A DNA stretch of 64,000 bases, taken from sequence record LR756508.1; one strand, written 5' to 3'. A model generated the notes under the pieces. It had not been told where the DNA came from. It saw only the letters and a list, made by a program, of their open reading frames with translations, and did not search any database. The position numbers and the translations under genes were made by a program. This document shows, piece by piece, positions 5,924 to 38,411 of the stretch (the first letter of the stretch is position 1; the number at the start of each line of letters is the position of its first letter).

Positions 5924-6676
5924 GTGAGCGTAAGATTTAAACAGCTACTTTTTGAGGTATCTTCGGCAAATGTAGTAGCTACCTCTCTAAAAAAAGAGTT
6001 GACTCCCCATCTATTTCCAAAACGCTCATATGAGATGGACGCACTGAGTGAGATGGAGGATTTTGACTATGAGGATTATGTTGATTTCATGTGGAAAGAT
6101 ATAATTGATATAGGAAGTAGATCTATAAAACTTAGAATTAGAAATTACAGCAGACTGCCAGAATTTGAGAGTTTAAAAGGAAGGTCAGATAGAAAATACA
6201 AGGAGACTGCAGTAGGTTACTTCAATGATATAGTAAAAGAAAATGGCTGGCATGTAAGTAGCGTAAATAAAAGAAAAGAATTAAAAGTAGTCTTTCGTAA
6301 AAATGAGGGGGAGCGAGTTGAGGTTGAAGGTCCTCTATATCATGTGACTTACAAAGATGCAGTTGATAAAATCCTGCAGAACGGTTTGAAGCCGAAAGAA
6401 GGAAAAAATACGTCTTTTCTCTATCCAGAGCGAATTTACCTATTTACCGAGTACAACGAGAGTTTGTTTGAGAGATTTGTTATTGAGAAGTCAAATACAA
6501 ATGTTTCTCCCCAAAAAAGAATGGCAGGTGGAATAGCGAAACCACCTTATTCCATCCTTAAAGTCGAGGATGTTAAAGACTACACGTTTTATAAGGATAA
6601 CGACATAAAAAACTCGGTGTGGACAAATCAAAGCATTCCGGATAACAAAATAGAGCACTTAAAGACGAAAGATTAA
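5924..6676 (+). CDS. ADP-ribosyltransferase-fold (Tpt1/KptA/DarT-like HxT) protein with short leader
   Basis: LYHVTYKDAVDKILQNGLKP..RIYLF motif; N-terminus MSVRFKQLLFE. Confidence 0.65.
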   Translation: MSVRFKQLLFEVSSANVVATSLKKELTPHLFPKRSYEMDALSEMEDFDYEDYVDFMWKDIIDIGSRSIKLRIRNYSRLPEFESLKGRSDRKYKETAVGYFNDIVKENGWHVSSVNKRKELKVVFRKNEGERVEVEGPLYHVTYKDAVDKILQNGLKPKEGKNTSFLYPERIYLFTEYNESLFERFVIEKSNTNVSPQKRMAGGIAKPPYSILKVEDVKDYTFYKDNDIKNSVWTNQSIPDNKIEHLKTKD

Positions 6677-7404
6677 TGTATAGACTAACGAAGATCCTGA
6701 GAGAAGAGGTAGCTCCAGCCGAAATCGAAGAGCTTGACGGTATTGGTGAGGTAAAGTCTTACCTGAATGAGCTGAATATAGAATACGACACCGAAAACGT
6801 GAATCAAAGTGAGGTAATGGTTGTTGGAGATCCGAAAAAATATATCGTAGAGTTTGATGGAAAGTTTCCCGTCGTTTCGGAGATTGAACGGTTTCTAAAA
6901 GAAAAAAGTCGACCAGGAGATTTCTACGAGTTCACAGGCGTAGATTTTAGAGAATATTACACTAATTTATTCTGGGATAACGTCGGAAAAATTTCCGAGT
7001 TCAATGAACTTTACCACGCTACTAAGGAACAACATGCAGATAGTATTCTGAAAAACGGGTTAGAAGCCAGAAAAGAATCGCGCATTCCGATGAGCAGAAT
7101 TCATCGGCCCGCAGTCTTCACAGTCAAGGACCTCGGGTATCTCGCCGATGAGACGTATGGCTCGGCGGTGATAGTAATTGATACGATGAAAATGAAAAAA
7201 GATAGCTTTACTCCAGATGTTGGAAGAGAAAAAGATTTTGAAAGAAAAGATATGGCAGCCTACCTAATTGATGAGTTAAACCTATATATTCCTGTTGAGC
7301 AGATAGTTCAGGCAGGAAAGAGAGGAACTGGAAGCTGGCGAGGCACAGTTGCTATCTATTCTGACGTCCCGCCTAAATATATTACTCAATTTGATGGAAG
7401 TTGA
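6676..7404 (+). CDS. ADP-ribosyltransferase-fold (HxT) protein with short leader
   Basis: LYHATKEQHADSILKNGLEAR..AVFTV..YGSAVIVID; N-terminus MYRLTKILREE. Confidence 0.65.
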   Translation: MYRLTKILREEVAPAEIEELDGIGEVKSYLNELNIEYDTENVNQSEVMVVGDPKKYIVEFDGKFPVVSEIERFLKEKSRPGDFYEFTGVDFREYYTNLFWDNVGKISEFNELYHATKEQHADSILKNGLEARKESRIPMSRIHRPAVFTVKDLGYLADETYGSAVIVIDTMKMKKDSFTPDVGREKDFERKDMAAYLIDELNLYIPVEQIVQAGKRGTGSWRGTVAIYSDVPPKYITQFDGS

Positions 7405-7442
7405 GTCTCACAAAATACTCTAAAGAAACTTAAAGACACAAG

Positions 7443-8267
7443 ATGGAAAACGCAAAGCATTATACTAGGATCGTTCAAAAGTTAAGAAGTTTTTTCTTAG
7501 AAAGAGATTTTGTTGAAGTTCCTGTCCAGTCGCAGGTAAAAATATTATCAGCCTGCGATGATCCAGAGACAATTATGACGACAGAGCTTGGTAGAAACAA
7601 GTGGCCACTACCTCAAACAGGTCAAATGCATCTTGAAGATTATTTTCTTAGCTATCCTGAAGAGGAGGGGTTTTTCTGTATCACTACGTCTTATAGAGAT
7701 GAACCGAACCCGATAGATGGTTGGCACGATAAGATTTTCCCTATTTTTGAGTTTGAAACTCATGGAAATATGGGAGATTTGATTGAGCTTGAATTCGAGC
7801 TAATGGATTACTTAGGTTTTAATGCTGAACCAAAAACAGTCGATTATGAGGACCTCTGCAAGATGTATGACACGAATTTGATTGGACCAGAGCACGAAAA
7901 AGAAATTCCGTATGCATTCTCTAATGTAGCGGCGATAAAGAATTTTCCTACTCGGTCTCATCCGTTTTTTAACGTTCGAAGAAAACCATTAGACTCTAAC
8001 AATTACAAAAAAGTTGACTTAATTTTACGTGGGAGAGAAACTATTGGATCAGCAGAAAGAGCAGTTAACGTCGAGCAGATGAGAGGAGATTTTTCTAAAT
8101 TTAAAGATGGGAAGTATGAACAATTTCTTACCAGAGAGTTTGGTGAACTGCGTGTGATGGAGGAACTCGAAAATTATCTTTCACACGACTTCATTGAGAG
8201 ATGCAGTGGAAGCATTGGAATAACAAGACTTCAACAAGGACTCATAGAAGAGGGAACTCTTGGGTAA
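7443..8267 (+). CDS. Class IIb aminoacyl-tRNA-synthetase-like stand-alone catalytic domain (AsnA2/EpmA-like)
   Basis: LPQTGQMHLE, motif 2 SYRDE..H..F..FEFE, KVDLILRGRETIGSAER, motif 3 GSIGITRL; no anticodon-binding domain. Confidence 0.75.
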   Translation: MENAKHYTRIVQKLRSFFLERDFVEVPVQSQVKILSACDDPETIMTTELGRNKWPLPQTGQMHLEDYFLSYPEEEGFFCITTSYRDEPNPIDGWHDKIFPIFEFETHGNMGDLIELEFELMDYLGFNAEPKTVDYEDLCKMYDTNLIGPEHEKEIPYAFSNVAAIKNFPTRSHPFFNVRRKPLDSNNYKKVDLILRGRETIGSAERAVNVEQMRGDFSKFKDGKYEQFLTREFGELRVMEELENYLSHDFIERCSGSIGITRLQQGLIEEGTLG

Positions 8268-8331
8268 GATTTAGTTTTTATATTTAAACTTGTAACCCAT
8301 CAAAATAACCAATAACTAAATTTTAAATATC

Positions 8332-8742
8332 ATGAGACTTTCAGAAAGAAAATTGCGAAGAATTGTTAAAGAAGAAATAAGCAGAGTTCTTAGAGAAGAT
8401 ATTGATACATCAATTCGCGCTGATGAGCCGTACGGTGTTGATGCTAAAGGAGGATATACCGTGTCCGTTACTGGAGGACCGGAAGCCGGTCGCTTGTATC
8501 TTGAAGTTGGACGGGGTAAGGTAGAAGATAAAGTAGAGCTTAGTGATACGGATGCTCTTAAACTCTCTACTGAGATTGAACGTATAGTTGGTGGTAGCGC
8601 TGGTGATCACAGAACCGTTAATGGCATTGAACTAGAAAGGAGCAGAGATGGCGTCTTCTTGCACCTTCCTAATGCTAGTGTATCTATGGATGTTTCTGCT
8701 GCGAAAAGACTTGCTGACCTCCTACATTCAAAGGCTGCCTAA
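8332..8742 (+). CDS. Leader-bearing protein (MRLSERKLRRIVKEEISRVLRE)
   Basis: 136 aa ORF with the shared motif. Confidence 0.8.
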   Translation: MRLSERKLRRIVKEEISRVLREDIDTSIRADEPYGVDAKGGYTVSVTGGPEAGRLYLEVGRGKVEDKVELSDTDALKLSTEIERIVGGSAGDHRTVNGIELERSRDGVFLHLPNASVSMDVSAAKRLADLLHSKAA

Positions 8743-8806
8743 AACACTTAAAAAAAAAAAAAAGACGAAAAACTAAATAAACTTTAAGATAAAAAAATGA
8801 AACACC

Positions 8807-9316
8807 ATGACTCTATCCGAAAGAAAGTTAAGAAGGATAGTCAAAGAGGAAATCAACAGAGTTTTAATGGAAGGCTGGGAAGATGAAACTGATAACCGTA
8901 GAGCAATAGGTTCAAAAGATACAGGGTCAGCAGTTACAGACAGGGAAGCGTATGATATTTCTAGGCAGTTTAGTTCTGCTTTCAATAAGCTAGATACGCT
9001 GCTGTATGATAAAAATAATAGACATTACGTAAAATCGAGCTCCGAACTAAAGAGAATGAAAAGTAAGATTCTCCGGGTTGCTAAGAAAGTTATTAATGGA
9101 GCGGAGAGTGCTCTTCGTGATGTGAAAAAGGCTGACGAAGGCCACTACCAGACGGAAGAAATCCGCGGAATGTTAGAAAAAATTATTGACAAAACCACGG
9201 ATTTGACTGGTTCACTTAAAGACAAATCTGGCGGTGATCCTCACGAAGCTGCAAGAGCAGTGCGGGCTAGCCATCAACACTACGACGAAATGAGCGGACC
9301 CGAATACTATAAATAA
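8807..9316 (+). CDS. Leader-bearing protein (MTLSERKLRRIVKEEINRVLME)
   Basis: 169 aa ORF with the shared motif. Confidence 0.8.
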   Translation: MTLSERKLRRIVKEEINRVLMEGWEDETDNRRAIGSKDTGSAVTDREAYDISRQFSSAFNKLDTLLYDKNNRHYVKSSSELKRMKSKILRVAKKVINGAESALRDVKKADEGHYQTEEIRGMLEKIIDKTTDLTGSLKDKSGGDPHEAARAVRASHQHYDEMSGPEYYK

Positions 9317-9338
9317 TTACGATAAGTGATGGGTCTGT

Positions 9339-12164: not shown

Positions 12165-12298
12165 AAAATTTAATGGTGATTAGATGTTCCTATGTCTAAC
12201 ACAACTATACATATTGAGAAAAAGCTTCTGAGCTGGGTAAAAAAGATGATCATATTCTATTTATCGCTGAGTTTGCCATAAATTCTCCTTCTCTTTAC

Positions 12299-13717
12299 TA
12301 AGAGTTCAAGAAAGCCTCCGGCTTTAGCCGCAGGATGAATTGAACCGCTACTACTTATTAATAAGTGCTTTCATTGGAATTTTTGTTAAATCAAATGAGG
12401 CTGACGAAAACGCTTAAATTTAAACTCAAAGGTTTAACTGAGCACGAAAAGTACGTTTTAAACCAGACGAGACGTCAGTTTCGAAAGTCTGTCAACTTTT
12501 ATCTATATCAGATTCAAAAGAAGTGCTCCACGACACGAACCGACTATAAAGAAGAATATCAGGAGGCCAGAGACTTATTCCAACTGAACTCAGCTCTGGT
12601 ACAGCAGTCAGAAGCTTTTGCTATAAACCAGTACAAATCTTTTAGAAATAACGAAAATAACGACTGGTTCCCACATTTCAGTTCTTTCGTTGACGTTCGT
12701 TATGATAATAGAACCATAAGCTTCAAAGATAAGAACGAAGAAACAAGCGAAATTGAAGTTTCGCTCGCTACAACACAGAGCCGAGTTGAAGCCACGCTTC
12801 AAGGTGGCAAGTATTGTTTCGAAGAGTTTCAGGCTGGTGAGTTTTGCGATGCCAGGTTGCGACGTCAAGACGGCGATTGGTACCTGAAGATTCACGTCAA
12901 GCGTGAAGCTGAAATCCAAAACGCCCGAGAAGCTGAGTATTACATCGGCCTTGACCTGGGTGTCAACAACCTGGCGACAATTGCAGTTCAAAACAGGGAA
13001 GGCGAGGTCGTCGAGACAAAGTTTTTCGATGGTTCATACGTAAGCGAGAAAAAACGAAGATTCAACGCCAAACGACGTGAATACATGCGAAAAGGCTTGT
13101 GGTCGAAGCTTAAACAAACGAAGGGGAAAGAGAAACGCTTTATCAAAGACGTCAACCACAAGATCTCGAAATACATCAAAGATTTATGTGAGAAATACAA
13201 GAACTCAACGGTTGTCATGGAGAACTTGGATGGCATCCGACAGGGCATGAACTTTAACTCAAAACAAAATAGAAGACTTCATAATTGGAGTTTCGGACAG
13301 CTTCAAGAGTATATCATCTACAAAGCTCATGAGGCTGGAAGCTCCTACCGTCGAGTTCCACCCTTTAACACCTCCAAGGTTTGCGGGAGCTGCTTCGATC
13401 TTATTGATCGAAGCTCGGAAAATAAGATTGTTGGAGCTTGTGAAACCTGCAAGCAAGAGGTGTTGAACGTGGATCTCAACGCAGCAGTCAACATCGTTCA
13501 ACGTTTGTGGTATTACATAACTCAAGACTTTCTTGAGGACACTGCATCACAAACTGAGCTATGTGAATTTAGCTCGGAGGGTTCAAGCTTTGAACCCCAT
13601 CAAGGAAGCTTTGACGGCAGAGTCGACACCGCTGCGGTTGATTCGAAAAATCAGCTCGTGTCGTCATTGAGCTTGAGCTTGTCTTGAAGCCCCCGTCCTT
13701 GGACGGGGGTCATTCAC
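12299..13717 (+). mobile_element. IS200/IS605-family element carrying tnpB only (copy 2)
   Basis: TTAC|taagagttcaag-AAAG-cctccggctttagccgcagg left end; GAAG-cccccgtccttggacggggg-tcat-TCAC right end. Confidence 0.88.
12395..13687 (+). CDS. tnpB: RNA-guided endonuclease TnpB, close paralog of 1936-3228
   Basis: Same RuvC D/E/D and CGSC..CETC motifs; ATG at 12395 (MRLTKTLKFKL) aligns with the start of copy 1. Confidence 0.93.
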   Translation: MRLTKTLKFKLKGLTEHEKYVLNQTRRQFRKSVNFYLYQIQKKCSTTRTDYKEEYQEARDLFQLNSALVQQSEAFAINQYKSFRNNENNDWFPHFSSFVDVRYDNRTISFKDKNEETSEIEVSLATTQSRVEATLQGGKYCFEEFQAGEFCDARLRRQDGDWYLKIHVKREAEIQNAREAEYYIGLDLGVNNLATIAVQNREGEVVETKFFDGSYVSEKKRRFNAKRREYMRKGLWSKLKQTKGKEKRFIKDVNHKISKYIKDLCEKYKNSTVVMENLDGIRQGMNFNSKQNRRLHNWSFGQLQEYIIYKAHEAGSSYRRVPPFNTSKVCGSCFDLIDRSSENKIVGACETCKQEVLNVDLNAAVNIVQRLWYYITQDFLEDTASQTELCEFSSEGSSFEPHQGSFDGRVDTAAVDSKNQLVSSLSLSLS

Positions 13718-13739
13718 AAATCCTCTAAAAAGAGCTAGA

Positions 13740-14975: not shown

Positions 14976-14985
14976 ATGAGATCTT

Positions 14986-24307: not shown

Positions 24308-24312
24308 GTTTT

Positions 24313-26652: not shown

Positions 26653-27179
26653 TGAGATTGAAAAAACTACTGGTTGAGTCAAATATCAAAAGTCTTAAAA
26701 AGAAAGTAAGCCAGGCAGATTTTGAATACCAGGTCAACATGTCTGGAAGAGACAATATTCAAGGCAAGCTAAATCGGACGTATCAACCCGAAACCATGCC
26801 TTCTCCAAACAAACCCGATAAAGGGCTGTGGACGGCTTTTCCTTATGTAAAAAATGGAAACCTTACAAATACGTGGAAAGCTTCCTCTCCCTCAAATCAG
26901 TTTGAGTACAACTACGAGTATTATCTAAAGGTAAGGGGAAATCCAAACGTTCTTGAGATCACTGAGAAGCACAAGTATGAGGACGTATACAACGAGTATG
27001 GAAAAAATGAAATGATGGGATTTTGGTTTTTGGATTATGAAAAGGTGGCAGAAGATTACGACTGCGTTTACGTTAGTAGAAGCGCCTTATCGGTTAAATC
27101 TCTCTGGGGATGGGACGTGCGTTCTGCCGTTTGGTTTGATACAAATTATTTGAGCTTGGTTTATACTAGAGAGATCTAA
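26652..27179 (+). CDS. Short-leader protein (MRLKKLLVE), possible ART fold
   Basis: KPDKGLWTA..W..YYLKV..VLEI..DYEKVAEDYDCV..LWGWDVRS pattern. Confidence 0.5.
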   Translation: MRLKKLLVESNIKSLKKKVSQADFEYQVNMSGRDNIQGKLNRTYQPETMPSPNKPDKGLWTAFPYVKNGNLTNTWKASSPSNQFEYNYEYYLKVRGNPNVLEITEKHKYEDVYNEYGKNEMMGFWFLDYEKVAEDYDCVYVSRSALSVKSLWGWDVRSAVWFDTNYLSLVYTREI

Positions 27180-27964
27180 TGGCCCAACTTAAAAAATTAT
27201 TGGTCGAGGAAAAGAAGTTAAACTTTTTTGAGAACGAACTAAACTCTGGCAACTGGTATTATCCGTCTCCCGATAAGCTGTTGTTTAGAGGTGAAGGGGG
27301 AATGGAAAATATTTGGGAGATAAAAGGGATAAGGAAAGATCGAGAACCGAGAGACACAAACCCTTTGATCCACGCGATAGTAGATGCTATAAATGAGGTA
27401 GAGCGCTACCGAGTTCCAAAAAGGAGCGAGGCTAAATTTGCTGGAGGATCGAATCGAGTAGATGACATGGAAGAATACGGAGATCTAACAGTTTGTTTTC
27501 CTGAAAAAAGTCAAAAAATATACTATCTTGAGGGAGACAGTTTTACGGATTTTATGTATGCCAATAAAAAATTGAAAGACATAACGTTTTTAAGTAATGA
27601 AGACATAGAGAATTTAAATGATGAATACCAGTACTTTAGTAATTTCTTTTATATTCTAAACCAGGTAAATGTAGATCTTAGCGTCCTCTATAATTTCATC
27701 AAAGAAACATATCGAGATACATTTAATCAAGCTAAGAAACTCTCTCAAACAATAAAATATGGTCCAGATATCAAATCTGCTGCTAAGTCAATGAAAAGAA
27801 TGTTTCAAATCATCGAGGATGAATACTATGAAAAGATTGATAGAGGTGTTAACCCGAATGCACATGAACATATTTTTGGCGGCGATCAATACCTTTCTAT
27901 AAAAAAGGAGGTTTTTGAAGAAAATTTCGAGTACGTTAAAGAAAATTGGAGGTTAAAAAGATAA
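27179..27964 (+). CDS. Short-leader protein (MAQLKKLLVEE), LFRG..REPRDT family, possible ART fold
   Basis: Paralog of 35584-36438: L[FY]RG, REPRDT, H, [VY]..FP motifs shared. Confidence 0.5.
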   Translation: MAQLKKLLVEEKKLNFFENELNSGNWYYPSPDKLLFRGEGGMENIWEIKGIRKDREPRDTNPLIHAIVDAINEVERYRVPKRSEAKFAGGSNRVDDMEEYGDLTVCFPEKSQKIYYLEGDSFTDFMYANKKLKDITFLSNEDIENLNDEYQYFSNFFYILNQVNVDLSVLYNFIKETYRDTFNQAKKLSQTIKYGPDIKSAAKSMKRMFQIIEDEYYEKIDRGVNPNAHEHIFGGDQYLSIKKEVFEENFEYVKENWRLKR

Positions 27965-27966
27965 AA

Positions 27967-28401
27967 ATGGTCAGGCTGTATAGAATACTAAAAGAGGTTA
28001 AAAAGCTTCCAGGTTATCTTTTTCACGTGACGGCTAAACAAAACCTGCCTAACATAAAGAAAGATGGATTAAAACCTGAACGGTCTGAGTCAAGCTCAGA
28101 TGGAGTATATTTAAGTAATGATGAATTTACTGCCGCAGATTATGCGAACATGCGGCCTTCCACCGACCACGTTCTTTTGAAAGTTGATACCTCCTATCTA
28201 AATAAAGAAAAGCTGTTTCCCGACGACTATGAACTCGTAGATTTTCTTGAGAGAAATGACTGGAAAGTTGGAGAAAAAAAGTATTACTCCGTCGAAAACG
28301 TGAGTTGGAAGGAAAGTCTAAAATACGTTAATCAGGTCATTTATAAAGATGTTATTCCATATGAAGCTATAGAAACTAAAAAGTCAAAATTCCTTCCATG
28401 A
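27967..28401 (+). CDS. ADP-ribosyltransferase-fold (HxT) protein with short leader MVRLYRILKE
   Basis: LFHVTAKQNLPNIKKDGLKP..GVYLSND..VLLKVD..IPYEAI; ATG at 27967. Confidence 0.68.
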   Translation: MVRLYRILKEVKKLPGYLFHVTAKQNLPNIKKDGLKPERSESSSDGVYLSNDEFTAADYANMRPSTDHVLLKVDTSYLNKEKLFPDDYELVDFLERNDWKVGEKKYYSVENVSWKESLKYVNQVIYKDVIPYEAIETKKSKFLP

Positions 28402-28414
28402 TAAGGGAATTTGA

Positions 28415-28951: not shown

Positions 28952-28953
28952 TA

Positions 28954-29256: not shown

Positions 29257-29336
29257 AACGAAAATGAATCCCCTATGGGAGGTCTGGCTCGATGCCGGAC
29301 CTCCCAATTTTTTTCTCGAACCAAACGTGACATTCC

Positions 29337-29629: not shown

Positions 29630-29757
29630 TCCGAGTCAAGAAAATATTGAGAAAGTATGAAGAAAACTGACTGGCCGTCTATGTATTGGTAGGAAACGAA
29701 GAAAAATGGTTACTTCGTGTTTTTCGAAACGAATGATAACAAATAGAGAGAAACCGA

Positions 29758-30246: not shown

Positions 30247-30514
30247 TTTTCTGGGCTTGTTGGCTTAGATTTTTGCGGATTATGTCTTCTTGCGCCTAAA
30301 AATATGCTCTTTTTCTTACGAACGTGATCACTTCCGTTTATCAGGAGGAAACCGTCAACTTAAGCAGAATTCCTGTATACTACCCTTAAATTGGAAAGCG
30401 CGTCAGTATTTTTACTCAGTTTTCAAAAACAATTAGGCAAACTTTCTATTATAGACAACCATAAAAAGCTGTGGAATTTTGCCTATATTTTTTTAAAAAT
30501 AACGTTACATCTCC

Positions 30515-32035
30515 ATGGACTTGGAGTTACAAGAAGAAATCGAGAGTTTGGTCGAAGAGAACCCGAAGCACTTCTATTGGAAGATAAAGAGTAAACATAA
30601 CGAACTTTTTGAAGAAATCGAAAATCAGTATGAAGATAAAGACTCTTTTTCCGAGGGTCTTTATCTTTTTCTGTATGGGGACGAAAAAGAGAAGTGCAAT
30701 TTGAAGGGCTGCTCCAACCCCTGCGTTTTCAGATCGTTTACCGATGGATATCGGAGCTATTGCTCAAAAAAGTGTGGGTATAAAAGCCAGAAAAACAAAG
30801 AGACAAGGAAGTGTGAAGTCTGTGAGTCTGAATTTGAAGTGAGAGAGAGTAGATCTAAAAAACTTTGTTCCCGAGAGTGCTGGCGCGAATGGAACCGCAG
30901 GGAAGATGTTCAGAAAAAACGTGAGAGAGCCAGAAAAAACACACTTCAACAGAAGTATGGTAACGATACATACCGAAATGTCAAAAAAGCGAAGAACACA
31001 AAAGAAAAGCGGTATGGAAATCCAAATTACAACAACTTAGAGAAGATAAAGTCTACAATGGAAGAAAAGTATGGTGGGATGGGTTTTCAATCTGATCATA
31101 TTCTTCAAAAGGTAGGCTCAAGTCGTTTCCCTCCCAACCAGTCGAAGTTAGAAAAAGAGCTGCAGGAGTTCATTTCCTCAATCACAGACTTCGAAGTCAA
31201 AACAAACCATCGTGGGTTTTTAAAAGGAAACAGGGAGCTGGATGTTTTTATCCCAGAGAAAAATGTAGCTATCGAATTCAATGGAATCTACTGGCATAGC
31301 GAAAATGGAGGCGGGGAATGTGGCCGAAATTATCATTTAAAAAAAACCGAGGAGTGCGAAGACAAAAATATCCAACTTATTCACGTTTTCGAAAACGAGT
31401 GGGAGGAAAAGAAAGAGATAGTCAAAGAAAGGTTAAAATATATCCTTGGAGAGTACGACGGGAAAAGAGTTTATGGTAGAGACACCGAGGTAAAAGAAAT
31501 TGAAGCTAAGCGGAAGAACGAGTTTTTAAGCGAGCACCACCTTCAGGGAGAAGATCGGAGTAACGTGAAGCTCGGATTGTTTTATAAAGGCAGCCTCGTA
31601 TCAGTTATGACGTTTTCAGAAAGAAGAGTTTCTTTAGGCGGAAACCCTGAAGACAATAGCTGGGAGCTTTCTCGGTTTTGTATGTCTTGCTCTGTTGTGG
31701 GCGGCGCTTCAAAACTTTTTTCTCATTTCGTTGAAAACCAGAATCCAGAAAAGGTCGTAACCTATGCAGATCGTAGGTGGAGTTCTTTAGCGAGAGGCAC
31801 GTTTTACGAAAAAACTGGGTTCGACTTCGATGGATTTGTTCGGCCTTCGTATTTTTATTTTGAAGAAAACGACAAAACAAATCTAAAACACAGGTTCAGT
31901 TTTCGCAAAAACGTATTAGGCGAGAAGCTTAAGGACTTCGATCCAGACCTTACGGAGTGGGAGAACATGAAAATGAATGGTTTTGATAGGATTTGGGACT
32001 GCGGAAAACTGCGGTATGTTTGGAGCGAAAAGTAG
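30515..32035 (+). CDS. Endonuclease family paralog 3
   Basis: ELDVFIPEKNVAIEFNGIYWHS; WELSRFC; GGASKLF; YADRRWS; RIWDCG. Confidence 0.75.
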   Translation: MDLELQEEIESLVEENPKHFYWKIKSKHNELFEEIENQYEDKDSFSEGLYLFLYGDEKEKCNLKGCSNPCVFRSFTDGYRSYCSKKCGYKSQKNKETRKCEVCESEFEVRESRSKKLCSRECWREWNRREDVQKKRERARKNTLQQKYGNDTYRNVKKAKNTKEKRYGNPNYNNLEKIKSTMEEKYGGMGFQSDHILQKVGSSRFPPNQSKLEKELQEFISSITDFEVKTNHRGFLKGNRELDVFIPEKNVAIEFNGIYWHSENGGGECGRNYHLKKTEECEDKNIQLIHVFENEWEEKKEIVKERLKYILGEYDGKRVYGRDTEVKEIEAKRKNEFLSEHHLQGEDRSNVKLGLFYKGSLVSVMTFSERRVSLGGNPEDNSWELSRFCMSCSVVGGASKLFSHFVENQNPEKVVTYADRRWSSLARGTFYEKTGFDFDGFVRPSYFYFEENDKTNLKHRFSFRKNVLGEKLKDFDPDLTEWENMKMNGFDRIWDCGKLRYVWSEK

Positions 32036-32097
32036 TGAACCAAGGCCAGTTATACTATATTTAATATAGAGTTGAAGGGCTTAATTAATTTTATAGA

Positions 32098-32817
32098 ATG
32101 CCAATGCAAGAAAAACTTCGGTCTATTGTTAAAGAAGAACTCCAAAAACTTGCTGAGAGAGCTGGAGTTCACCCACACAGATTTCGTAAGATCCGAAAGC
32201 GGTTAGAGATGAAGCACGGCTTCGAAATCACCGACTGGGGCACAGCCGATAGAGGTCAGTATGTGGAGCTCGATGGAAGCCATCGGATTGAATTCTTTCT
32301 CCGTGGAAGCAACGCTGCGGAAATTATCGTTGATGGAGAGTCAATTGGAAGAACTCGCCTCAGTAGAATTACAGACGCTATTGAAAACGCCGTCGAATCA
32401 GGAACGGTATTGGACCCAGAATACCGCTCCGAGGAAAGTAAAATTAGAGAGATTATTCGTAGGGAGCTAAAAGAGTTTGACGTAGCTCAACTTCCTTCAG
32501 CGAACTCAGTAAGAGGTGGGTACAATAAAAAAGTAGAGAATAAAAAAGACTTGGACGAAGATCACCTTTCTGACGGAGACAAGAGAAGGCTCAACAGAAA
32601 ACTCCGAGAATTACTTCGAAGAGCAGAAGCCGTTGATGAATTTGTAGAGAAGTCTATGAATCTCTATGGCAGAAATGGAAAACATAGCCCAATGGTTCTT
32701 ACTACGTTGGATGACATGAAGTGCTTTAGCGACGTCCGTTCCCGACTTGACCGACTCGCAAATTACTTAAAGGACGAATATCCGAACTTCGAATGGACTT
32801 TTAAGGAATCAATTTAA
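32098..32817 (+). CDS. Protein with two leader copies (N-terminal and internal)
   Basis: QEKLRSIVKEELQKLAE at the start and EESKIREIIRRELKE at nt 32431-32475. Confidence 0.75.
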   Translation: MPMQEKLRSIVKEELQKLAERAGVHPHRFRKIRKRLEMKHGFEITDWGTADRGQYVELDGSHRIEFFLRGSNAAEIIVDGESIGRTRLSRITDAIENAVESGTVLDPEYRSEESKIREIIRRELKEFDVAQLPSANSVRGGYNKKVENKKDLDEDHLSDGDKRRLNRKLRELLRRAEAVDEFVEKSMNLYGRNGKHSPMVLTTLDDMKCFSDVRSRLDRLANYLKDEYPNFEWTFKESI

Positions 32818-32832
32818 ACTTGAGAAAATGAT

Positions 32833-33294
32833 ATGGAAAAAAGAATAGAAAAGTTTGTAGACTATATTCGAGATTATCTTCGAAGACAAGACGCTAACAG
32901 CACAAATAAAGGTAAAATTAATCGTTTGCTTAAAAATGAGTTTGGAAGTCAAGCTGTTCGCTCCCGAGATCCACAAAAAGTTGTTAACGTGCTAAAGAAG
33001 GATGGAATTTTAACTCACGACTCGGACTCCTTTGGAAGCTACGATTACTACGTTCATCTGAGCGAGCAGAACGGCCTCCGACAAATTGTTCGAGAGGAGC
33101 TAAAAAACATTCTATCCGAGCAGGGCCGAGGACATCTTCCTAGCCAAGCCCAGCAACACATTAAAGACGCTCAGTATAATCTCGATCAAGCGAAAGGGGA
33201 GCTTCTCGGAACCGATTTCGAAGACTCTCAAATCTACGACGACCTCGCAAAAGCAGACCGAATTCTCAAATCCTACATTGACCAAATGAGATAA
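32833..33294 (+). CDS. Protein with an internal leader copy
   Basis: GLRQIVREELKNILSE at nt 33073-33120. Confidence 0.72.
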   Translation: MEKRIEKFVDYIRDYLRRQDANSTNKGKINRLLKNEFGSQAVRSRDPQKVVNVLKKDGILTHDSDSFGSYDYYVHLSEQNGLRQIVREELKNILSEQGRGHLPSQAQQHIKDAQYNLDQAKGELLGTDFEDSQIYDDLAKADRILKSYIDQMR

Positions 33295-33297
33295 ATT

Positions 33298-33555
33298 ATG
33301 AGACTAAAAGAAAGCCAACTAAGAAACGTTATACGTCAGGAGATTCAAAACGCTTTGACCGAAGATGATGATGGAGCGCTAAACCCCTGCATGTACTGCG
33401 GCTCTTCTGCCGAAAGGGCCAGAGATTATGCGCGGTCGGGCAAAACCACGATGATGGTAAGGTGCTCGAACGTGAACGACTGTCCAAATTGGACGGCAGT
33501 TGGCGCAAAAACACGGAGCGAAGCAGGTCAAGCCTGGAATGAGCTTCACTCTTAA
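33298..33555 (+). CDS. Leader fused to a Lar/Ral-like restriction-alleviation Zn domain
   Basis: MRLKESQLRNVIRQEIQNALTE, then LNPCMYCG..VRC..C..EA..AWN, the Lar-family signature. Confidence 0.7.
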   Translation: MRLKESQLRNVIRQEIQNALTEDDDGALNPCMYCGSSAERARDYARSGKTTMMVRCSNVNDCPNWTAVGAKTRSEAGQAWNELHS

Positions 33556-33569
33556 TTTGAGATTTGAGC

Positions 33570-33812
33570 ATGAAAGTTTCTGCAGACACACTAAGAAAAA
33601 TAATTAAGGAGGAAACAAGAGACCTGCTTAACGAAAAAGACAAATTCGATGGGCAGTCTGGAAACACTCTTCGCGTAAAAAAGAGAGCTTATCGCCAGGG
33701 AAGTGGCGTTGGGGGGATAATGATAAGCATAGAAGATGGTGGCAGGCCAGTGTTTCTAACAACGGATCAAGCTGGGAAGCTGAAGAATGCTATTGAGATG
33801 AAAACAAATTAG
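33570..33812 (+). CDS. Leader-bearing small protein (MKVSADTLRKIIKEETRDLLNE)
   Basis: ATG at 33570 begins the shared motif. Confidence 0.75.
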   Translation: MKVSADTLRKIIKEETRDLLNEKDKFDGQSGNTLRVKKRAYRQGSGVGGIMISIEDGGRPVFLTTDQAGKLKNAIEMKTN

Positions 33813-33851
33813 ACTAACAAAGTTTTGAATTAATCAAAAAATTGATGTATT

Positions 33852-34025
33852 ATGAGGCTTACAGAAAACAGACTTAAAAAAATTGTGCAAGAGGAGCTTG
33901 CAGAGGTTCTTTTCGAAGATGATCCCTGCTGGGAGAATTATACTATGGTGGGAATGAAACAAAAAAATGGGAAACTGGTTCCTAACTGCGTTCCCGACGA
34001 TGACGTTGAAAATTATGAAGGCTAA
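33852..34025 (+). CDS. 57-aa leader-bearing miniprotein with CW..Y...G.K.K.G..VPNCVP module (not in the ORF track)
   Basis: Translated by hand: MRLTENRLKKIVQEELAEVLFEDDPCWENYTMVGMKQKNGKLVPNCVPDDDVENYEG*. Confidence 0.8.
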   Translation: MRLTENRLKKIVQEELAEVLFEDDPCWENYTMVGMKQKNGKLVPNCVPDDDVENYEG

Positions 34026-34077
34026 TCTAATAGTTAGCAGTTTGAAAAGACTGTTTTAATATAATAGGGAATCTCAT

Positions 34078-34647
34078 ATGAAGCTACAAAATATCTTATA
34101 TGAGTCTGAGATCGTAAAAGAAAAACACGATCTTTCTGGCGCACCAGAAGAATTTGAAGTTCCAGATGTTAGCTCTAGCGCTAACAAGTTTAAAAATCCA
34201 AACGAAGTTGATCTCGGAGCCGTGAACTTTCTGGATACTGGTCCAGAGGGATGGGAAGCAGATGCCAACTCAAAAACGGCGAGTGCAGTAACGCTCGTTG
34301 ACGTCAAGGACGCAAAAAAACTGGAGGGAAAAATGAGGGAAAACAGAAAGTGGCACAAAAGAGAAGGCGAATGGTGGTTTGGCAATTTTCCACTCAAGAG
34401 CGAGGATGAAAATGTAACAACCTGGCAAAAATTTGTGAATGACATAGCCGAAAATGGCCTGGACTGGCCTATTACTGTATCGGTAACAAAATGGGGTGAA
34501 GCATTTCTGAGAGAAGGAAACCATCGCCTGGCAGTTTATGATCTTCTCGATATTCAACAAATACCCACTCATATCTGGTGGTGGGGAAACGTCCAAGGAA
34601 CGAAGCGTGATCCAATGAAAGAATACTTCGAAAAGGCATTTGAGTAA
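34078..34647 (+). CDS. ParB/Sulfiredoxin-like N-terminal domain protein with short leader MKLQNILYE
   Basis: DIAENGLDWPITV..FLREGNHRLAVY..IP, the ParB/Srx GxxR motif. Confidence 0.7.
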   Translation: MKLQNILYESEIVKEKHDLSGAPEEFEVPDVSSSANKFKNPNEVDLGAVNFLDTGPEGWEADANSKTASAVTLVDVKDAKKLEGKMRENRKWHKREGEWWFGNFPLKSEDENVTTWQKFVNDIAENGLDWPITVSVTKWGEAFLREGNHRLAVYDLLDIQQIPTHIWWWGNVQGTKRDPMKEYFEKAFE

Positions 34648-34726
34648 GTTTTCTGTTCAAACTCGCCTCAAGGGCTTGATTCTATAGTCTAATTTGAAAA
34701 GTTCTCGGTCTCAAAAAACGTAGTGG

Positions 34727-35584
34727 ATGATGAAAAAAAATTCTTCAAAAAAGCTCCAAAGAATTATTCTGGAGGAGTTAAGAAAATATAATCGAGATCG
34801 AGAGCTACTAAGCGAGTCTGGATTTCAACCAAGAAGTTCCCTCAAAAACTTTCAAAGGCAACGCAAAGGGATGATGTCAAACCTCATGGGAGGCGGCCCG
34901 AGCAGACCATCTACTCCCATGGAACAAGACTTTGGATGGAACCCACCTGAAGTCGATGAGTTTGATGGAAAATACCAGCTTGCAGAGAGTAGCAGTTTCA
35001 CAAATGGAAAAAGTGTTATAACTGAAAACGAGTCTGGCGTCGAGTCGACCTCTGAAGCTCAAATTGTAATCAGCACAAGCGATGCGAAAAGCTGCAGGCG
35101 AGCAGAAAATCATAAAAATTTGTGGAGAATAGTTCAAGGAAAAGGCTGGTACTTCGGGAAATATCCGTTAAATGAACGCGAAGACGAAGAAGTTTACTCG
35201 TGGAGAAAAATAATAAATGAGTTGGCGGAAAATGGTCCAAAAAAGCCAATCGAAATCCACGTCTGGTATAACGGTGAAGCAAAACTTTATGAAAGTAAAT
35301 ACGGAGCTGCGGCCTACGACATGCTTGGAATTCCACAGGTTCCCGCTCACATCAAATGGTTTGGGGGATCAGGTGGAACCGAAAGAGACGAGTTAAAAGA
35401 ATATTACCAAAGAGCTTTCCTCCCTAAAAATGCCAATAGTTTAGATCAATATTTTGATGGCGTAGACGGAGTGAACTTCGTAAGTGATAAGAAAAGAGTG
35501 AACTGGGTTGATGGAGACTCCGAGGTTCCTACCAGCCCTGCCGAAGCTTTGAAGACAGGAAACTACAAGGAGGGAAATATCTAA
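34727..35584 (+). CDS. Tandem paralog of the previous gene with the catalytic motif lost; long leader
   Basis: Aligns over W[WY]FG.[FY]PL..W....[DE][IL]AENG...PI...GEA, but EGNHR is replaced by ESKYG; starts KKLQRIILEELRKY..LLSE. Confidence 0.65.
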   Translation: MMKKNSSKKLQRIILEELRKYNRDRELLSESGFQPRSSLKNFQRQRKGMMSNLMGGGPSRPSTPMEQDFGWNPPEVDEFDGKYQLAESSSFTNGKSVITENESGVESTSEAQIVISTSDAKSCRRAENHKNLWRIVQGKGWYFGKYPLNEREDEEVYSWRKIINELAENGPKKPIEIHVWYNGEAKLYESKYGAAAYDMLGIPQVPAHIKWFGGSGGTERDELKEYYQRAFLPKNANSLDQYFDGVDGVNFVSDKKRVNWVDGDSEVPTSPAEALKTGNYKEGNI

Positions 35585-36438
35585 TGGTAAAATTCAAGTC
35601 ACTTCTTTTTGAGTCAGATCGTTTTGATGACCTATCAAAACCTGAAAAAGATGAAAAAGTTGAAGACTTAAAAAACCAGTTGAATACTGGCAACTGGATT
35701 GTAAAGGAGCCACTTCTTTATCGGGGAAGAGAGTGGGATGGTTTAATGAAAGTAAAAGACTCCGAGCGCTACGAAAAAAGAGAGCCCAGAGACACCAAAC
35801 TGCACTACGATTATCTAATTCATCACTTCACAGTTAACTGTTATCCAAACCTTCCTGACAGAAGAAAAAGTCGCTTCGCTTTGACTCATTTCGGAGATAC
35901 AAACATTTTCGGCGATGAGACCTATGTAATTTTCCCTCATAAGGATGCTAAAATTGCTTACTCTTACATGGATCCTTATGATTTTATAGTTGACATGCCG
36001 AAAAGAAAACAGGGTTTCATAAAAGGGTTAAAACCTTTTTTTAAAGATGGCAAGGAAAAAACATCACTTTATAAGAAATACGAAGATCAGATTTCAAAAG
36101 AGGTTAAAAACCTTATGTCTGACCTTTATGACGTTTATAATGGCAGTGAAATGCCTCTTTCACGTTACGGATGTCCCGAAGAAATCCTTGAAATGCTGAA
36201 CAATGAGTTGGATAAATTCAACGGAGACGAGCCTGGAGAGATTCGAAAAGTTATTTCGGGACTTAGCAATCTGATATGGATTTTTGAATCTGTTGTTTTA
36301 GAATATTTCGAAATTTTTAATACTGGGTATCCAGAGAATAAAGATATGGGAGCGGGAGAGGTTCTATATCAAGGAAAGTACCTGCAGGTTCATCGAGACC
36401 TGTTTGTGTTCGCTAAAGAAGAAAACGAGATAACATAA
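35584..36438 (+). CDS. Short-leader protein (MVKFKSLLFE), LYRG..REPRDT family, possible ART fold
   Basis: Paralog of 27179-27964. Confidence 0.5.
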   Translation: MVKFKSLLFESDRFDDLSKPEKDEKVEDLKNQLNTGNWIVKEPLLYRGREWDGLMKVKDSERYEKREPRDTKLHYDYLIHHFTVNCYPNLPDRRKSRFALTHFGDTNIFGDETYVIFPHKDAKIAYSYMDPYDFIVDMPKRKQGFIKGLKPFFKDGKEKTSLYKKYEDQISKEVKNLMSDLYDVYNGSEMPLSRYGCPEEILEMLNNELDKFNGDEPGEIRKVISGLSNLIWIFESVVLEYFEIFNTGYPENKDMGAGEVLYQGKYLQVHRDLFVFAKEENEIT

Positions 36439-36469
36439 TTCAAAATTTTAACCAAGAAAGAGAAAATGA

Positions 36470-37075
36470 ATGGATTTTAATGTTTTAGCCAAAAATTTAT
36501 TCGTAGAGGTTCGGAAGCCAGACGTAGATTATAACGAGGAGTTTGTAGAAGATCAGCTTGATAAAGTTGTTGCAGTCCTGGAAGGAAAACAAGGGTCTTA
36601 TACAACTGCCCTGGCAAGAGAATACGATCAAGTAAACAATGAATATAAGGAACTAAAAGAAGAAAGAAAAGAACTACGTGGCGACTTGTTGGAGCACGCA
36701 GAGAGCCTTTTTGACGCGGAAGACGAGGTAGCTACAAGGATTATCGAAACTGTCGGTCTTACCCTACAGCTTGATAAGCCTGTTTCTTACGAGCGTGAAG
36801 ACTTCGATAAAGAGGGGTTTTTAAAGGAGCTAATGGATCTTGTGCCCGAGCTTGAGGAACAGATCGAGGAGCTAATCGAGAAGTATACAGAAGTCAAGCA
36901 GATTGAGCGGTCTTCGAGGGTAAGAGTAAAAGAGGAAGGAATGAAAGACAAAGTTCAGAAAGCCTGGAATAAAGTTTCCGATGTCCTTTACGGATTCTGG
37001 CAAAAAATTCGGCGCTGGGGTCAAAGCTATGATCGTCGACTGGAGAAAATTCGAGCCAAGTACCTTTCTTCCTAA
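36470..37075 (+). CDS. Coiled-coil hypothetical protein with short-leader variant (LAKNLFVE)
   Basis: 201 aa helical ORF. Confidence 0.65.
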   Translation: MDFNVLAKNLFVEVRKPDVDYNEEFVEDQLDKVVAVLEGKQGSYTTALAREYDQVNNEYKELKEERKELRGDLLEHAESLFDAEDEVATRIIETVGLTLQLDKPVSYEREDFDKEGFLKELMDLVPELEEQIEELIEKYTEVKQIERSSRVRVKEEGMKDKVQKAWNKVSDVLYGFWQKIRRWGQSYDRRLEKIRAKYLSS

Positions 37076-37148
37076 ATAATCTCAGGCAAGGTTAAAAACA
37101 GAAAGAGAAAGTCTGTCAAATCAGACTTTAAGATTTGAGACATTAATA

Positions 37149-38411
37149 ATGCAGAAACTGCAGGACTTACTTTTTGAGGCGGTTTCTCCACTTCTATATC
37201 ACGTTACCGATCTTGGAAGAGCAGTCAATATTTTAAAAGAAGATAAGTTCCGTCTAACGCCTGCTTTTGGAACTGGAAGTGACATGGAAAAACAAAAAGG
37301 CAAGCTTTACTTTCTTAGCACTTCGCGTATAAAGTATGGAGGATACACGAGAAGTCTATCAGACGAAGGATACGTGAATATGGAGCTAGATGGCCGAAAG
37401 TTAGGTCACAACTATCAATCTGTTAACGTTGATTACTGGGATGGAGAATTTAGAGATGTTGCCTGGCAGAAAGGAGACATGCAGCAGTTTTTAAGGTATG
37501 ATGAAAACGAAGAAAGAATTATCACCGACGACGCAGAAATTAAACCAGCCACAAAATATATTAAGTCGCTGCACGTAATAGTGGGAGAAGACGTCAAACA
37601 AAGAAAGAAAAAGAAATACAAGAAACTAGAAAAGTTAGCTAAGAAAAATAGAGTCGAAATACATTTCTACACAAATCCAAAGCACTGGAAAAGGCAGTGG
37701 GAAGAAAAAGCTGATAGTTCAGTTTCTGAAATGTTTGGAGAAATTGAAGGAGAGTATGAAGATGCTGGTACTCCGAGAGTTTATGGGACTCCGACTTATA
37801 TTACGGGTGCGGTAGAATTATTCAAAGCAGACAGCCTGGAAGACTTGCCTGAAGATGGGCAGGAAATGTTCAAAAAACTAAAGAATAGCACTCCTCATAA
37901 CTTTGAGAACGTTCTTAAGAACAAAATTCATAATAACAAGTCAAACCCGAAGGTTCTCGATGACATAAAGTTTCTGGCTGGAAAAATGAAGCAGGAAGGA
38001 AAAAACAGTATAAGTGGCCTTATTGAAATTCTTTCACAAGAGGTAAAAGAACTTCAAAAGCAAGACTTGGATGGGTTGAAAAGAAAATATGACAGTTTAG
38101 TTAAAGCTATTCTTGACTTCTATAACATAAAAGATAAACCTGAACCTTCGGAGAAGGACCTAAATAGAAAAGGGCACTTGGATGCTATAATCAAACACTT
38201 TTCTTTTGATAAGGGGAAGCCTAAAGAATGGGATAACCAGAGAACAAACAAAGCTCTGGAAGCTGTCAATGACATAGAAAGACTTCTTAGCGTTGGATTT
38301 TTTGATAATCTGCAGAAAGTTTTAGAGAAAGAAAACCGAGATCACGACCTGCTTAATTTCATTCATGAAGTCATTCAGCCAGTTGTGAGAAGGGTGATCG
38401 ATAATCTTTAA
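37149..38411 (+). CDS. ART-fold candidate (H-S-E type) with short leader MQKLQDLLFE and helical C-terminal half
   Basis: LLYHVT..NILKE..YFLSTSR..ELDG..ENEERI. Confidence 0.55.
   Translation: MQKLQDLLFEAVSPLLYHVTDLGRAVNILKEDKFRLTPAFGTGSDMEKQKGKLYFLSTSRIKYGGYTRSLSDEGYVNMELDGRKLGHNYQSVNVDYWDGEFRDVAWQKGDMQQFLRYDENEERIITDDAEIKPATKYIKSLHVIVGEDVKQRKKKKYKKLEKLAKKNRVEIHFYTNPKHWKRQWEEKADSSVSEMFGEIEGEYEDAGTPRVYGTPTYITGAVELFKADSLEDLPEDGQEMFKKLKNSTPHNFENVLKNKIHNNKSNPKVLDDIKFLAGKMKQEGKNSISGLIEILSQEVKELQKQDLDGLKRKYDSLVKAILDFYNIKDKPEPSEKDLNRKGHLDAIIKHFSFDKGKPKEWDNQRTNKALEAVNDIERLLSVGFFDNLQKVLEKENRDHDLLNFIHEVIQPVVRRVIDNL

Follow-up and report, generated by a model that had tools for sequence, protein, structure and literature searches.

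Leader-tagged proteins with putative, divergent His-type ADP-ribosyltransferase domains in an uncultured huge phage

Results

Four candidate ADP-ribosyltransferases

We analyzed a stretch of 64,000 nucleotides from LR756508.1 (positions 186001–250000, containing no N; hereafter the window), a 484,177-bp assembly of an uncultured, T4-related huge phage that carries no annotation. Four open reading frames (ORFs) on its plus strand, 5924–6676, 6676–7404, 27967–28401 and 37149–38411 (named below by their first position in the window), are predicted to encode very divergent proteins of the single-domain type, belonging to the His branch of the ADP-ribosyltransferase (ART) superfamily, which includes Tpt1/KptA, DarT and PARP; the assignment is secure for 37149 and 27967. 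All four begin with a short leader that resembles the capsid-targeting peptides of phage T4. Considering the sequences, the structural model of 37149 and the analogy to T4 together, we find it on balance probable that these proteins are NAD+-using enzymes that would be loaded into the phage head and delivered at infection.

The searches covered 426 ORFs in the window and 2,370 genome-wide; for the identification of paralogs the remainder of LR756508.1 was taken in separate, unjoined pieces (numbered with the prefix L; L004:9480, for instance, corresponds to genome position 156480). The family libraries were Pfam, PHROGs, NCBIfam and PADLOC, the PDB was searched by sequence, by profile and by Foldseek, and BFVD was used as a further source of relatives.

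Three small candidate ART lobes resembling Tpt1

The pattern [LYF][YF]HxT.{3,12}I...GL.[PA] occurs at exactly three sites in the six frames of the window (nt 6335, 7009 and 28018), which fall within ORFs 5924–6676, 6676–7404 and 27967–28401, respectively. When the residues of the called proteins were shuffled 2000 times, this strict form was matched 0.0 times on average and a looser one 0.035 times. The pattern was written from these same genes after inspection, and independent support comes from phmmer, in which the three ORFs matched one another and no other among the window ORFs (E-values of 1e-3 to 8e-3); they again matched each other in a hidden Markov model (HMM) search of the genome-wide set. 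The original prediction, which had been made from the DNA letters and their translations and had placed this motif in all three genes, was thus borne out.

Profile comparisons extend the relationship to known proteins. A joint profile of the three small lobes retrieved eight distinct Tpt1 chains from the PDB before anything else (E-values of 4.5e-4 to 8.5e-3), followed by E. coli DarT1 (8BAQ, E-value 0.014), both ahead of the first unrelated protein. Pairwise comparison of the families with hhalign yielded 90% over 71 columns for 27967 and 6676, 88% for 27967 and 5924 (92% after addition of two distant relatives of the latter), and 87–88% for 6676 and 5924. The alignment of 27967 with 5924 takes in the His strand and the following one (ERIYLF opposite DGVYLS), with the His and the Tyr of beta2 in register. 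Within each small family the HX[S/T] strand, the GL.P turn and the aromatic residue of beta2 are invariant down to 54–59% identity. Tpt1/KptA (PF01885; PDB 6EDE, 9LD4, 7YW4) is the sole named sequence relative of 27967, of 6676 and of the joint profile, and it has in common with the small lobes the HX[S/T] strand, a helix with GL.P, a second strand, and a C-terminal strand of the form ..V....IP..I. The HX[S/T] motif is the ribose-contacting element of Tpt1-like ARTs (PMC8120803).

Among the three, 27967–28401 (144 aa; leader MVRLYRILKE at 27967–27996) gives the clearest matches. Its motifs are LFHVT (aa 18–22), GLKP, GVYLS, HVLLKVD and YVNQVIY..IP. It was matched by PF01885 in Pfam (E-value 6.1e-5, with PARP and ART-PolyVal each at 0.011), by PHROG 5470, annotated as "RNA 2'-phosphotransferase" (1.4e-5), by NF002013 in NCBIfam (1e-6), and by Tpt1 in the PDB (7e-4 with the single sequence, 4.8e-5 with the family profile). 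Six relatives, all from sister huge phages, carry precomputed PF01885 matches, and one of them also a match to PF00644. The alignments span only the NAD+ lobe of Tpt1 (approximately residues 90–155), with the HxT strand placed at Tpt1 residue ~95, and they bring strands 1 and 2 of 27967 into correspondence with those of solved Tpt1 structures. The HxT strand starts within seven residues after the leader, which leaves no room for an RNA lobe. A tblastn search against cultured phages returned no usable annotated relative of 27967 or 6676, and a match in Pantoea phage Phynn (E-value 0.07) was found to be spurious on inspection. From these sequence comparisons, the identification of 27967 as a minimal ART domain of the His-Tyr type, restricted to the NAD+ lobe and related to Tpt1, is well supported. 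It should not be regarded as a Tpt1, because the RNA lobe is absent, SSSDG occupies the position at which Tpt1 has an Arg ahead of its second strand, and GVYLS is found opposite the VHVS/VHLS of the solved Tpt1 chains.

ORFs 5924 and 6676 form a tandem pair in which the ATG of 6676 overlaps the stop codon of 5924 by one base. The product of 5924–6676 (250 aa, GTG start, leader VSVRFKQLLFE at 5924–5956) comprises approximately 130 N-terminal aa and a C-terminal candidate ART lobe with LYHVT (aa 138–142), GL.P, PERIY and FYKD..SVWT..IP, while that of 6676–7404 (242 aa, leader MYRLTKILREE at 6676–6708) has LYHAT at aa 112–116 and AVFTV as beta2. Each has six or seven close relatives (six in the case of 6676), all from sister huge phages. 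Tpt1 is the top ART-related match of 6676 in four libraries, with marginal E-values (Pfam 0.016, PHROG 5470 0.029, NCBIfam NF002014 0.0093, PDB 9ld4 0.027 with the profile), and in NCBIfam it is outranked by a NifW model (0.005). The PDB alignment, weak as its E-value is, covers Tpt1 residues 47–131 and so includes part of the N lobe; the invariant R92 of the 6676 family lies opposite one Tpt1 Arg, and no Arg-His pair is present among the invariant columns of the family.

For 5924, tblastn revealed distant relatives with approximately 30% identity in the 735-kb phage LR756501.1 and in Lak phages, which have kept LYHxT, I, GL.P, N, PERxY, D and T. The matches in Lak-A and Lak-B2 were set aside, as they do not lie within one open frame, and a scan of IMG/VR added no further relatives; a PDB search with the 5924 sequence returned no match. 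At the level of the fold, the evidence for both 6676 and 5924 is of the profile-profile kind only. We consider it probable for 6676, and likely for 5924, that the protein has an ART lobe like that of 27967, in both cases placed behind an N-terminal domain of no known kind. The pair is preceded by a thioredoxin gene (5161–5451, E-value 1e-22), and directly downstream of it lies a gene for a 274-aa class II aminoacyl-tRNA-synthetase-like protein (7443–8267; tRNA-synt_2, E-value 7e-9, catalytic core only).

A large phage family with a predicted ART fold

ORF 37149–38411 encodes a protein of 420 aa (leader MQKLQDLLFE at 37149–37178), whose predicted ART domain (aa ~12–145, approximately nt 37180–37585) is followed by an alpha/beta segment (aa ~150–200) and an all-helical C-terminal region (aa ~215–420); the latter matched no known structure. 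The sequence has no match in Pfam, PHROGs, PADLOC or NCBIfam, and its family has none in Pfam (61 members searched), in PHROGs or in a PDB sequence search. An exhaustive HMMER search revealed that this family is large, with 1,411 representative clusters, 785 of them at E-values of 1e-10 or below, mostly proteins of ~300 aa. In an alignment of 61 members with a mean column identity of 20%, G82, Y96, E119, E121 and R123 are invariant and H18, T20, I28, S57, R60, G64, D95 and W97 nearly so.

The AlphaFold2 (AF2) model built from this alignment is of high confidence (predicted local distance difference test, pLDDT, 93.9; predicted template modelling score, pTM, 0.88). In the Foldseek comparison with ART structures that the original prediction had proposed, all eight top PDB matches are DarT/DarTG or yeast Tpt1 (probability 0.90–1.00, E-values of 0.02–0.24, target template modelling (TM) score up to 0.70). 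Seven of these eight are DarT/DarTG (probability 0.90–0.99, E-values 0.02–0.24, target TM score 0.23–0.47), and the ninth match is CC0527, a protein grouped with Tpt1 among divergent ARTs (PMC8120803). The features expected of the fold, namely a split beta-sheet, HX[S/T], an aromatic residue or STS on beta2, and an acidic residue at a later strand (PMC8120803), are all found in the model. Of the strands formed by residues 15–21, 54–59 and 121–126, beta1 carries H18 and T20 within the sequence LLYHVT (residues 15–20) and beta2 carries Y54 and S57-T58-S59-R60, while E119-x-E121-x-R123 enters the later strand. The "H..S..E variant" noted in the original prediction corresponds to H18, S57 and E119/E121; that this gene has the same LLYHVT strand had been missed. 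As STS and the catalytic Glu mark the cholera-toxin group (PMC8120803), the 37149 family appears, from alignment and model, to combine a His-type first strand with an STS and Glu of cholera-toxin type, i.e. to possess a complete-looking catalytic set. On the strength of the model, the ART fold of 37149 is well supported. No bridge to the small families was detected by hhalign, which yielded 53% with 27967 (with the His and the YLS strand in register), 7% with 6676 and 3% with 5924.

Members of the 37149 family occur in many phages. Its BFVD relatives belong to large myoviruses, among them Dickeya phage JA11, Agrobacterium phage Atu_ph07 and Bacillus phage SP-15, and are all uncharacterised; weaker matches lead to several Bacillus phage G proteins and to proteins encoded by giant viruses, by baculoviruses and by an iridovirus. 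Using tblastn we found homologues in 33 records of cultured phages, often in two to five copies and always annotated as "hypothetical"; they include phages of Dickeya (JA11/JA29), Pseudomonas (Lu11 and HRDY3), Vibrio (6E35.1a), Alishewanella (Slickus01), Salicola (SCTP-2), Salmonella and Microcystis (Mel-JY01). The domain is also found within giant phage proteins beside ART-PolyVal, NUDIX and GNAT domains. Such proteins (P0025, P0147 and P0162, with the locus L016:8001–14855; 1376–2284 aa) come from phage-like metagenomic contigs. P0025 has a 37149-type domain at 673–814 and ART-PolyVal at 971–1128, P0147 has them at 1629–1758 and 1003–1146, respectively, together with NUDIX and GNAT, and P0162 combines the 37149-type domain with NUDIX. 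Judged by their domain composition, P0025 and P0147 would each be a polyvalent effector that combines ART domains of two kinds, and the polyvalent-protein context has been linked to injected effectors (PMC9503650).

Comparison with known systems

The original prediction had compared the candidates with Tpt1/KptA and DarT, and this comparison holds at the level of the fold and does not extend to membership of either family. No candidate reaches the Tpt1/KptA cut-offs (26 bits in Pfam, 231–239 bits in NCBIfam): the PF01885 and NCBIfam scores are 23.6 and 28.4 bits for 27967 and 15.7 and 15.8 bits for 6676, the Pfam score of 5924 is 14.0 bits, and 37149 has no match. Tpt1 consists of a winged-helix RNA lobe and an NAD+ lobe (PMC8120803), of which 27967 has the second only, and the catalytic tetrad RH-R-R of Tpt1 (PMC8120803) is conserved in none of 27967, 6676 and 5924. 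Of its H-H-h triad, all four candidates have the first His; the second position is occupied by Tyr in 27967 (GVYLS) and 5924 (ERIYL) and by Phe in 6676 (AVFTV). In addition, all four candidates carry the leader, whereas Tpt1 proteins are not described as having one. Tpt1 is also among the top structural matches of 37149. ART-PolyVal (PF18760) has a cut-off of 31.2 bits, which 27967 with 16.9 bits (E-value 0.011) does not reach.

DarT (PDB 7OMW, 7OMV, 7YK3, 8BAQ), the ART toxin of DarTG that acts on thymidine or guanosine in DNA, provides the best structural match of the ART domain of 37149; in both, the first strand is of the His type and a later strand is entered by an acidic residue. Sequence models of DarT in Pfam and PADLOC matched none of the five ORFs named in the original prediction (the four above and 26652, discussed below), and those in Pfam none of the 61 members of the 37149 family. 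DarT belongs to a bacterial toxin-antitoxin pair, whereas 37149 is phage-encoded, has a leader, and lacks an adjacent antitoxin gene of the macrodomain or NADAR type, as neither of its neighbours (36470–37075 and 38465–40198) has a match to these domains. The STS and ExE signature of 37149, ascribed to ARTs of cholera-toxin type (PMC8120803), is a further difference.

The T4 enzymes Alt, ModA and ModB are ARTs of the R-S-E type. All four candidates have His rather than Arg on strand 1, and no match to the Alt or Mod families was detected in Pfam, PHROGs, the PDB sequence search or Foldseek. The likeness to Alt suggested in the original prediction is thus not one of enzyme type: the candidates have ART domains of the H type. 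What remains is a functional analogy with Alt as an injected ART that enters the phage head by means of a short targeting peptide at its N-terminus, packaging of the present candidates being a prediction; the protease and capsid protein families of T4 are both represented in LR756508.1.

A parallel may be seen in the head-packaged and polyvalent ARTs of jumbo myoviruses (Iyer et al. 2022, PMC9503650). ARTs are present in more than 40% of jumbo phages, with at least 10 in Bacillus phage G and a strong enrichment in myoviruses, and approximately 44% of them occur in contexts that suggest head packaging (PMC9503650). As in LR756508.1, a genome may contain several fast-evolving ARTs whose packaging is predicted from context; there, the context is a MuF/portal fusion or a polyvalent protein, whereas here the proposed signal is a short shared leader.

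The leader and the prohead protease

The leader consists of approximately 10 codons and ends in hydrophobic-hydrophobic-x-Glu (h-h-x-E), which falls at residues 10–11 in the four ART candidates and generally at residues ~9–15. The original prediction had described all five of its ORFs as leader-tagged, which is correct, but the leader is not specific to ARTs: 55 plus-strand ORFs of the genome, approximately 21 of them in the window, start with M.{1,9}[KRQ].hh.E, as compared to 6.2 expected from shuffles and none on the minus strand. We distinguish two flavours, A (M[KR]L[ST]E.KLR.I[IV].EE), found in small proteins of 80–170 aa, and B (M.[KR][LF]K.LL.E), found in larger proteins including the ART candidates. 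The leader is conserved at the protein level only: the codons for Leu, Lys and Glu vary freely and the upstream DNA is dissimilar, and on this ground we reject a nucleotide element such as a promoter, a ribosome-binding site or a recombination cassette.

The prohead proteases of T4, phiKZ and SPN3US recognise short x-X-E motifs and cleave behind the Glu, and the capsid-targeting sequences of T4 are N-terminal propeptides of 10–20 residues (PMC5694885). LR756508.1 encodes a prohead protease of the gp21 type (Peptidase_S77, E-value 5.4e-26; L004:9480–11201, genome 156480–158201), whose gene contains an intein bearing a LAGLIDADG homing-endonuclease domain, and in the same genome a T4-type capsid protein, gp23 (E-value 2.7e-82), in which L-L-x-E occurs four times within the ~72 residues ahead of the match to the gp23 model. 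At least 12 small leader genes of flavour A surround the protease gene (L004:5300–16200, genome 152–163 kb), an arrangement that resembles the genes for internal and core proteins around gene 21 of T4. Similar small leader genes fill the window at 1188–5108, 8332–9316, 32098–33812 and 57424–57738. The internal proteins of T4 and the ejection proteins of giant phages (PMC5694885) offer the same combination of a short N-terminal peptide that ends where the protease cuts behind a Glu, numerous paralogs among the cargo, and genes near the prohead protease; what sets the lineage of LR756508.1 apart is the number of leader genes (~55) and the existence of two leader flavours. The resemblance to T4 targeting peptides is one of sequence pattern only, i.e. 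the h-h-x-E at residues 10–11 and its excess over expectation. In our opinion the leader fits a T4-type capsid-targeting and cleavage peptide, and head packaging can reasonably be inferred, because the leader ends in h-h-x-Glu and a T4-type prohead protease is encoded in the genome, amid leader genes.

Other leader-tagged genes and genomic context

Iterated HMM searches of the genome revealed a family of ~26 paralogs (240–285 aa). Every member is encoded on the plus strand and carries the leader M.[KR][LF]K.LL.E, and tandem arrays are frequent. Their sites include L004:30696–36572, L005:6039–15082, L006:29376–39230 and L008:44732–45529, and two members lie in the window: 27179–27964 (plus strand, 261 aa), located between 26652 and 27967 and matching phrog_11975, which has no known function (E-value 8.9e-11), and 35584–36438 (plus strand, 284 aa, leader MVKFKSLLFE). 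The conserved residues are R37-G38 (YRG), R55, P80/R82/S85 (PKRSxSxF) and E230 (EV..DG.YL). The family matches only PHROGs of no known function (11975 and 15932), and its profile has no ART match in the PDB or Pfam. The Arg...Ser...Glu pattern in these sequences is reminiscent of the R-S-E ARTs. The family profile matched coiled-coil and designed helical proteins via a helical insert, and in Pfam individual members gave weak matches with no common pattern, so that an assignment as R-S-E ARTs remains an idea.

ORF 26652–27179 (plus strand, 175 aa, leader MRLKKLLVE) is the first gene of the tight cluster 26652/27179/27967. The original prediction had listed it as a weaker ART candidate, which we reject: it has neither the HxT motif nor similarity to the other four candidates, and no match in Pfam, PHROGs, PADLOC or NCBIfam. 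For the five ORFs taken together, the proposed ART fold is therefore upheld for 27967 by four libraries and for 37149 by the predicted structure, is probable though unsettled for 6676 and 5924, and is dropped for 26652. Outside the window we noticed two more weak candidates of the HxT type, L006:263–1018 (genome 298263–299018), which lies between two members of the ~26-paralog family and has an E-value of 0.015 against the 27967 profile, and L001:34909–35271, a 121-aa ORF with VYHWSPSENRKSIMQDGL; neither has a meaningful Pfam match.

Nearly all genes of the window are on the plus strand. They include two tail-sheath paralogs, very large proteins of the tail/baseplate region, a RecA/UvsX-like gene, a 5'-3' exonuclease and a gp41-type helicase, and the order of the tail and replication genes is the same as in Microcystis phage Mel-JY01. 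The tail-sheath paralogs (16463–18937 and 19952–22426) have exactly 824 aa each and are ~1 kb apart. Duplicated genes are found elsewhere in the window as well. Four large paralogous ORFs (22538–24307, 24265–26652, 30515–32035 and 38465–40198; 506–795 aa) have N-termini that are alike (..EE.P..FYWKIKSK....C.LKGCS..), with a weak zinc ribbon in 38465 as their sole library match; scattered as they are among other genes, they would suit a mobile or selfish gene family. ORFs 1936–3228 and 12365–13687 (~430–440 aa) are paralogs with near-identical N-termini (M[KR]LTKTLKFKL..L..H..Y.L.QT..QFRKSVNFYL.Q) and look like a repeated mobile-element gene. Finally, 34078–34647 and 34727–35584 are adjacent leader-tagged paralogs with a common C-terminal module (W.K..N...ENG...P........GEA.L.E......A.D.L.I...P.HI.W.G), whose single match is a faint one to a ParB-like PHROG (E-value 0.028).

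Discussion

The reading that we favour for 5924, 6676, 27967 and 37149 is that these proteins would bind NAD+ and transfer ADP-ribose to a macromolecule of the host or the phage; the Tpt1-like ones might place it on a phosphorylated end of a nucleic acid. As leader-tagged proteins they would be loaded into the prohead core, their leader would be trimmed after the Glu by the Peptidase_S77 prohead protease of the phage, and they would leave the head with the DNA, acting at the very start of infection. We regard such delivery as plausible, since the leader looks like a T4-type targeting and cleavage peptide and a T4-type prohead protease is present in the genome.

Several observations weigh against this reading. 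The ART matches of the two members of the tandem pair are not significant on their own: the best E-value is 0.0093 for 6676, and for 5924 no match to any known ART is better than that to PF01885 in Pfam (0.053). The 5924 family, with or without its two distant relatives, retrieved nothing relevant in PDB profile searches, and the AF2 model of 5924, built from an alignment of six sequences, is poor (pLDDT 47); its Foldseek matches (a reverse transcriptase and Argonaute, probability up to 0.2) were discarded as meaningless. In 6676 a Phe is found where Tyr or His is expected at the second position of the triad, and in none of 27967, 6676 and 5924 could the catalytic acidic residue be placed from the alignments. 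The Foldseek E-values of 37149 lie between 0.02 and 0.24, so that the argument for its fold is founded on ranking, probabilities and motif geometry. As to the leader, relatives of 37149 from many phages begin with M.KL..LL.EG.SP.LYH.T, which could be a signal widespread among related myoviruses or simply a structural element, the start of the domain. Furthermore, the window belongs to the tail and replication part of the genome and not to the head module.

With respect to function, 27967, 6676 and 5924 could be cytoplasmic enzymes of the KptA kind, which would remove or cap phosphates on nuclease-damaged ends of tRNA or other RNA in repair or end processing and would not be injected. RNA 2'-phosphotransferases are indeed the only named matches, the alignment of 6676 enters the N lobe of Tpt1 with one Arg in register, the pair is directly followed by a class II aminoacyl-tRNA-synthetase-like gene, and KptA homologues for tRNA repair are known in some jumbo phages (PMC9503650, PMC7824862). 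We nevertheless consider this explanation unlikely, given scores far under the family cut-offs (23.6 versus 26 bits in Pfam and 28 versus 231 bits in NCBIfam), the lack of an RNA lobe in 27967, a tetrad that none of the three conserves (PMC8120803), a Tyr or Phe in place of the second His of the triad, and, in all of them, the leader common to the genes around the prohead protease. It is to our mind equally improbable that the ART-like fold has been kept and the activity lost, as in fast-evolving internal head or scaffold-like proteins or in mere binders of NAD+ or ADP-ribose. The acidic residue that could not be placed in the three small lobes, the Phe of 6676 and the occurrence of the leader on dozens of small proteins of no recognisable function would agree with such a loss. 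On the other hand, HX[S/T], GL.P and the beta2 aromatic residue are invariant at 54–59% identity, and in the relatives of 5924 at ~30%; the full H/STS/ExE set of 37149 has been kept over 61 sequences with 20% mean column identity; and active phage ARTs in which only the His is conserved, such as AcrIF11, do exist (PMC8120803).

A different objection concerns the leader, which might be a common N-terminal helix with another role (localisation elsewhere, a tag for assembly of a different structure, or a signal for translation or degradation); the ART-like proteins would then be ordinary phage proteins inside the cell. In its favour, the N-terminus of the 37149 family is conserved in many phages and runs straight into beta1, residues 4–7 are helical in the model with lower confidence (pLDDT 70 for the first ten residues), and ~55 cargo proteins would amount to a very large head load. 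We find this doubtful, as the leader always ends in h-h-x-Glu, the form of a protease site cut after Glu (PMC5694885), and such a protease is encoded in the genome; leader genes crowd around the protease gene and LL.E motifs recur in the N-terminal extension of the capsid protein; and giant phage heads with ~50 protein species, many of which are ejected, have been documented (PMC7411985, PMC10052503). As for 5924 alone, its motif might be a chance or convergent resemblance in a protein that is not an ART, as could be argued from the Pfam E-value, the empty PDB sequence searches, the poor model with its meaningless structural matches, and the hhalign value of 3% with the 37149 family. This seems rather unlikely to us: hhalign relates 5924 to the 27967 family at 88–92% over the His and Tyr strands, phmmer matches the three small ORFs to one another, 5924 is translationally coupled in tandem with 6676, and its distant relatives conserve the residues expected of an NAD+ site. 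Its C-terminal ..VWT..IP..IE moreover lines up with the ends of the 27967 and 6676 lobes, and the matching C-terminal segment of the joint profile aligns to the C-terminus of Tpt1, a stretch that is not significant alone.

The favoured reading of four head-loaded His-type ARTs can be extended, tentatively and with considerably less confidence, to a leader that serves as a general ticket into the head for an NAD+-using arsenal, in which the four candidates would be joined by the ~26 paralogs as Alt-like R-S-E transferases. If true, this set of injected ADP-ribosyltransferases would exceed by far any other seen in a single virus.

Since jumbo-phage ARTs and their packaging contexts have already been described, including jumbo myoviruses with several ARTs that evolve fast and are often packaged (PMC9503650), our finding is a new instance of a known theme, and its value lies in the detail and not in the concept. 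It adds four very divergent ART domains of the His type to the known set. We regard the structural assignment of the 37149 family and the leader rule for head cargo as the most useful products of this analysis. The former gives structural grounds to call a family of 1,411 clusters ART, which matched no model in Pfam, PHROGs or PADLOC and whose members bear only the labels "hypothetical" or "uncharacterised" in those BFVD entries and phage records that were examined. The latter would be a simple sequence rule that predicts the head cargo of this lineage of huge phages, and it can be tested on the virion proteomes of cultured relatives. Enzymes carried in the head reveal what a phage is capable of before any of its genes is expressed.

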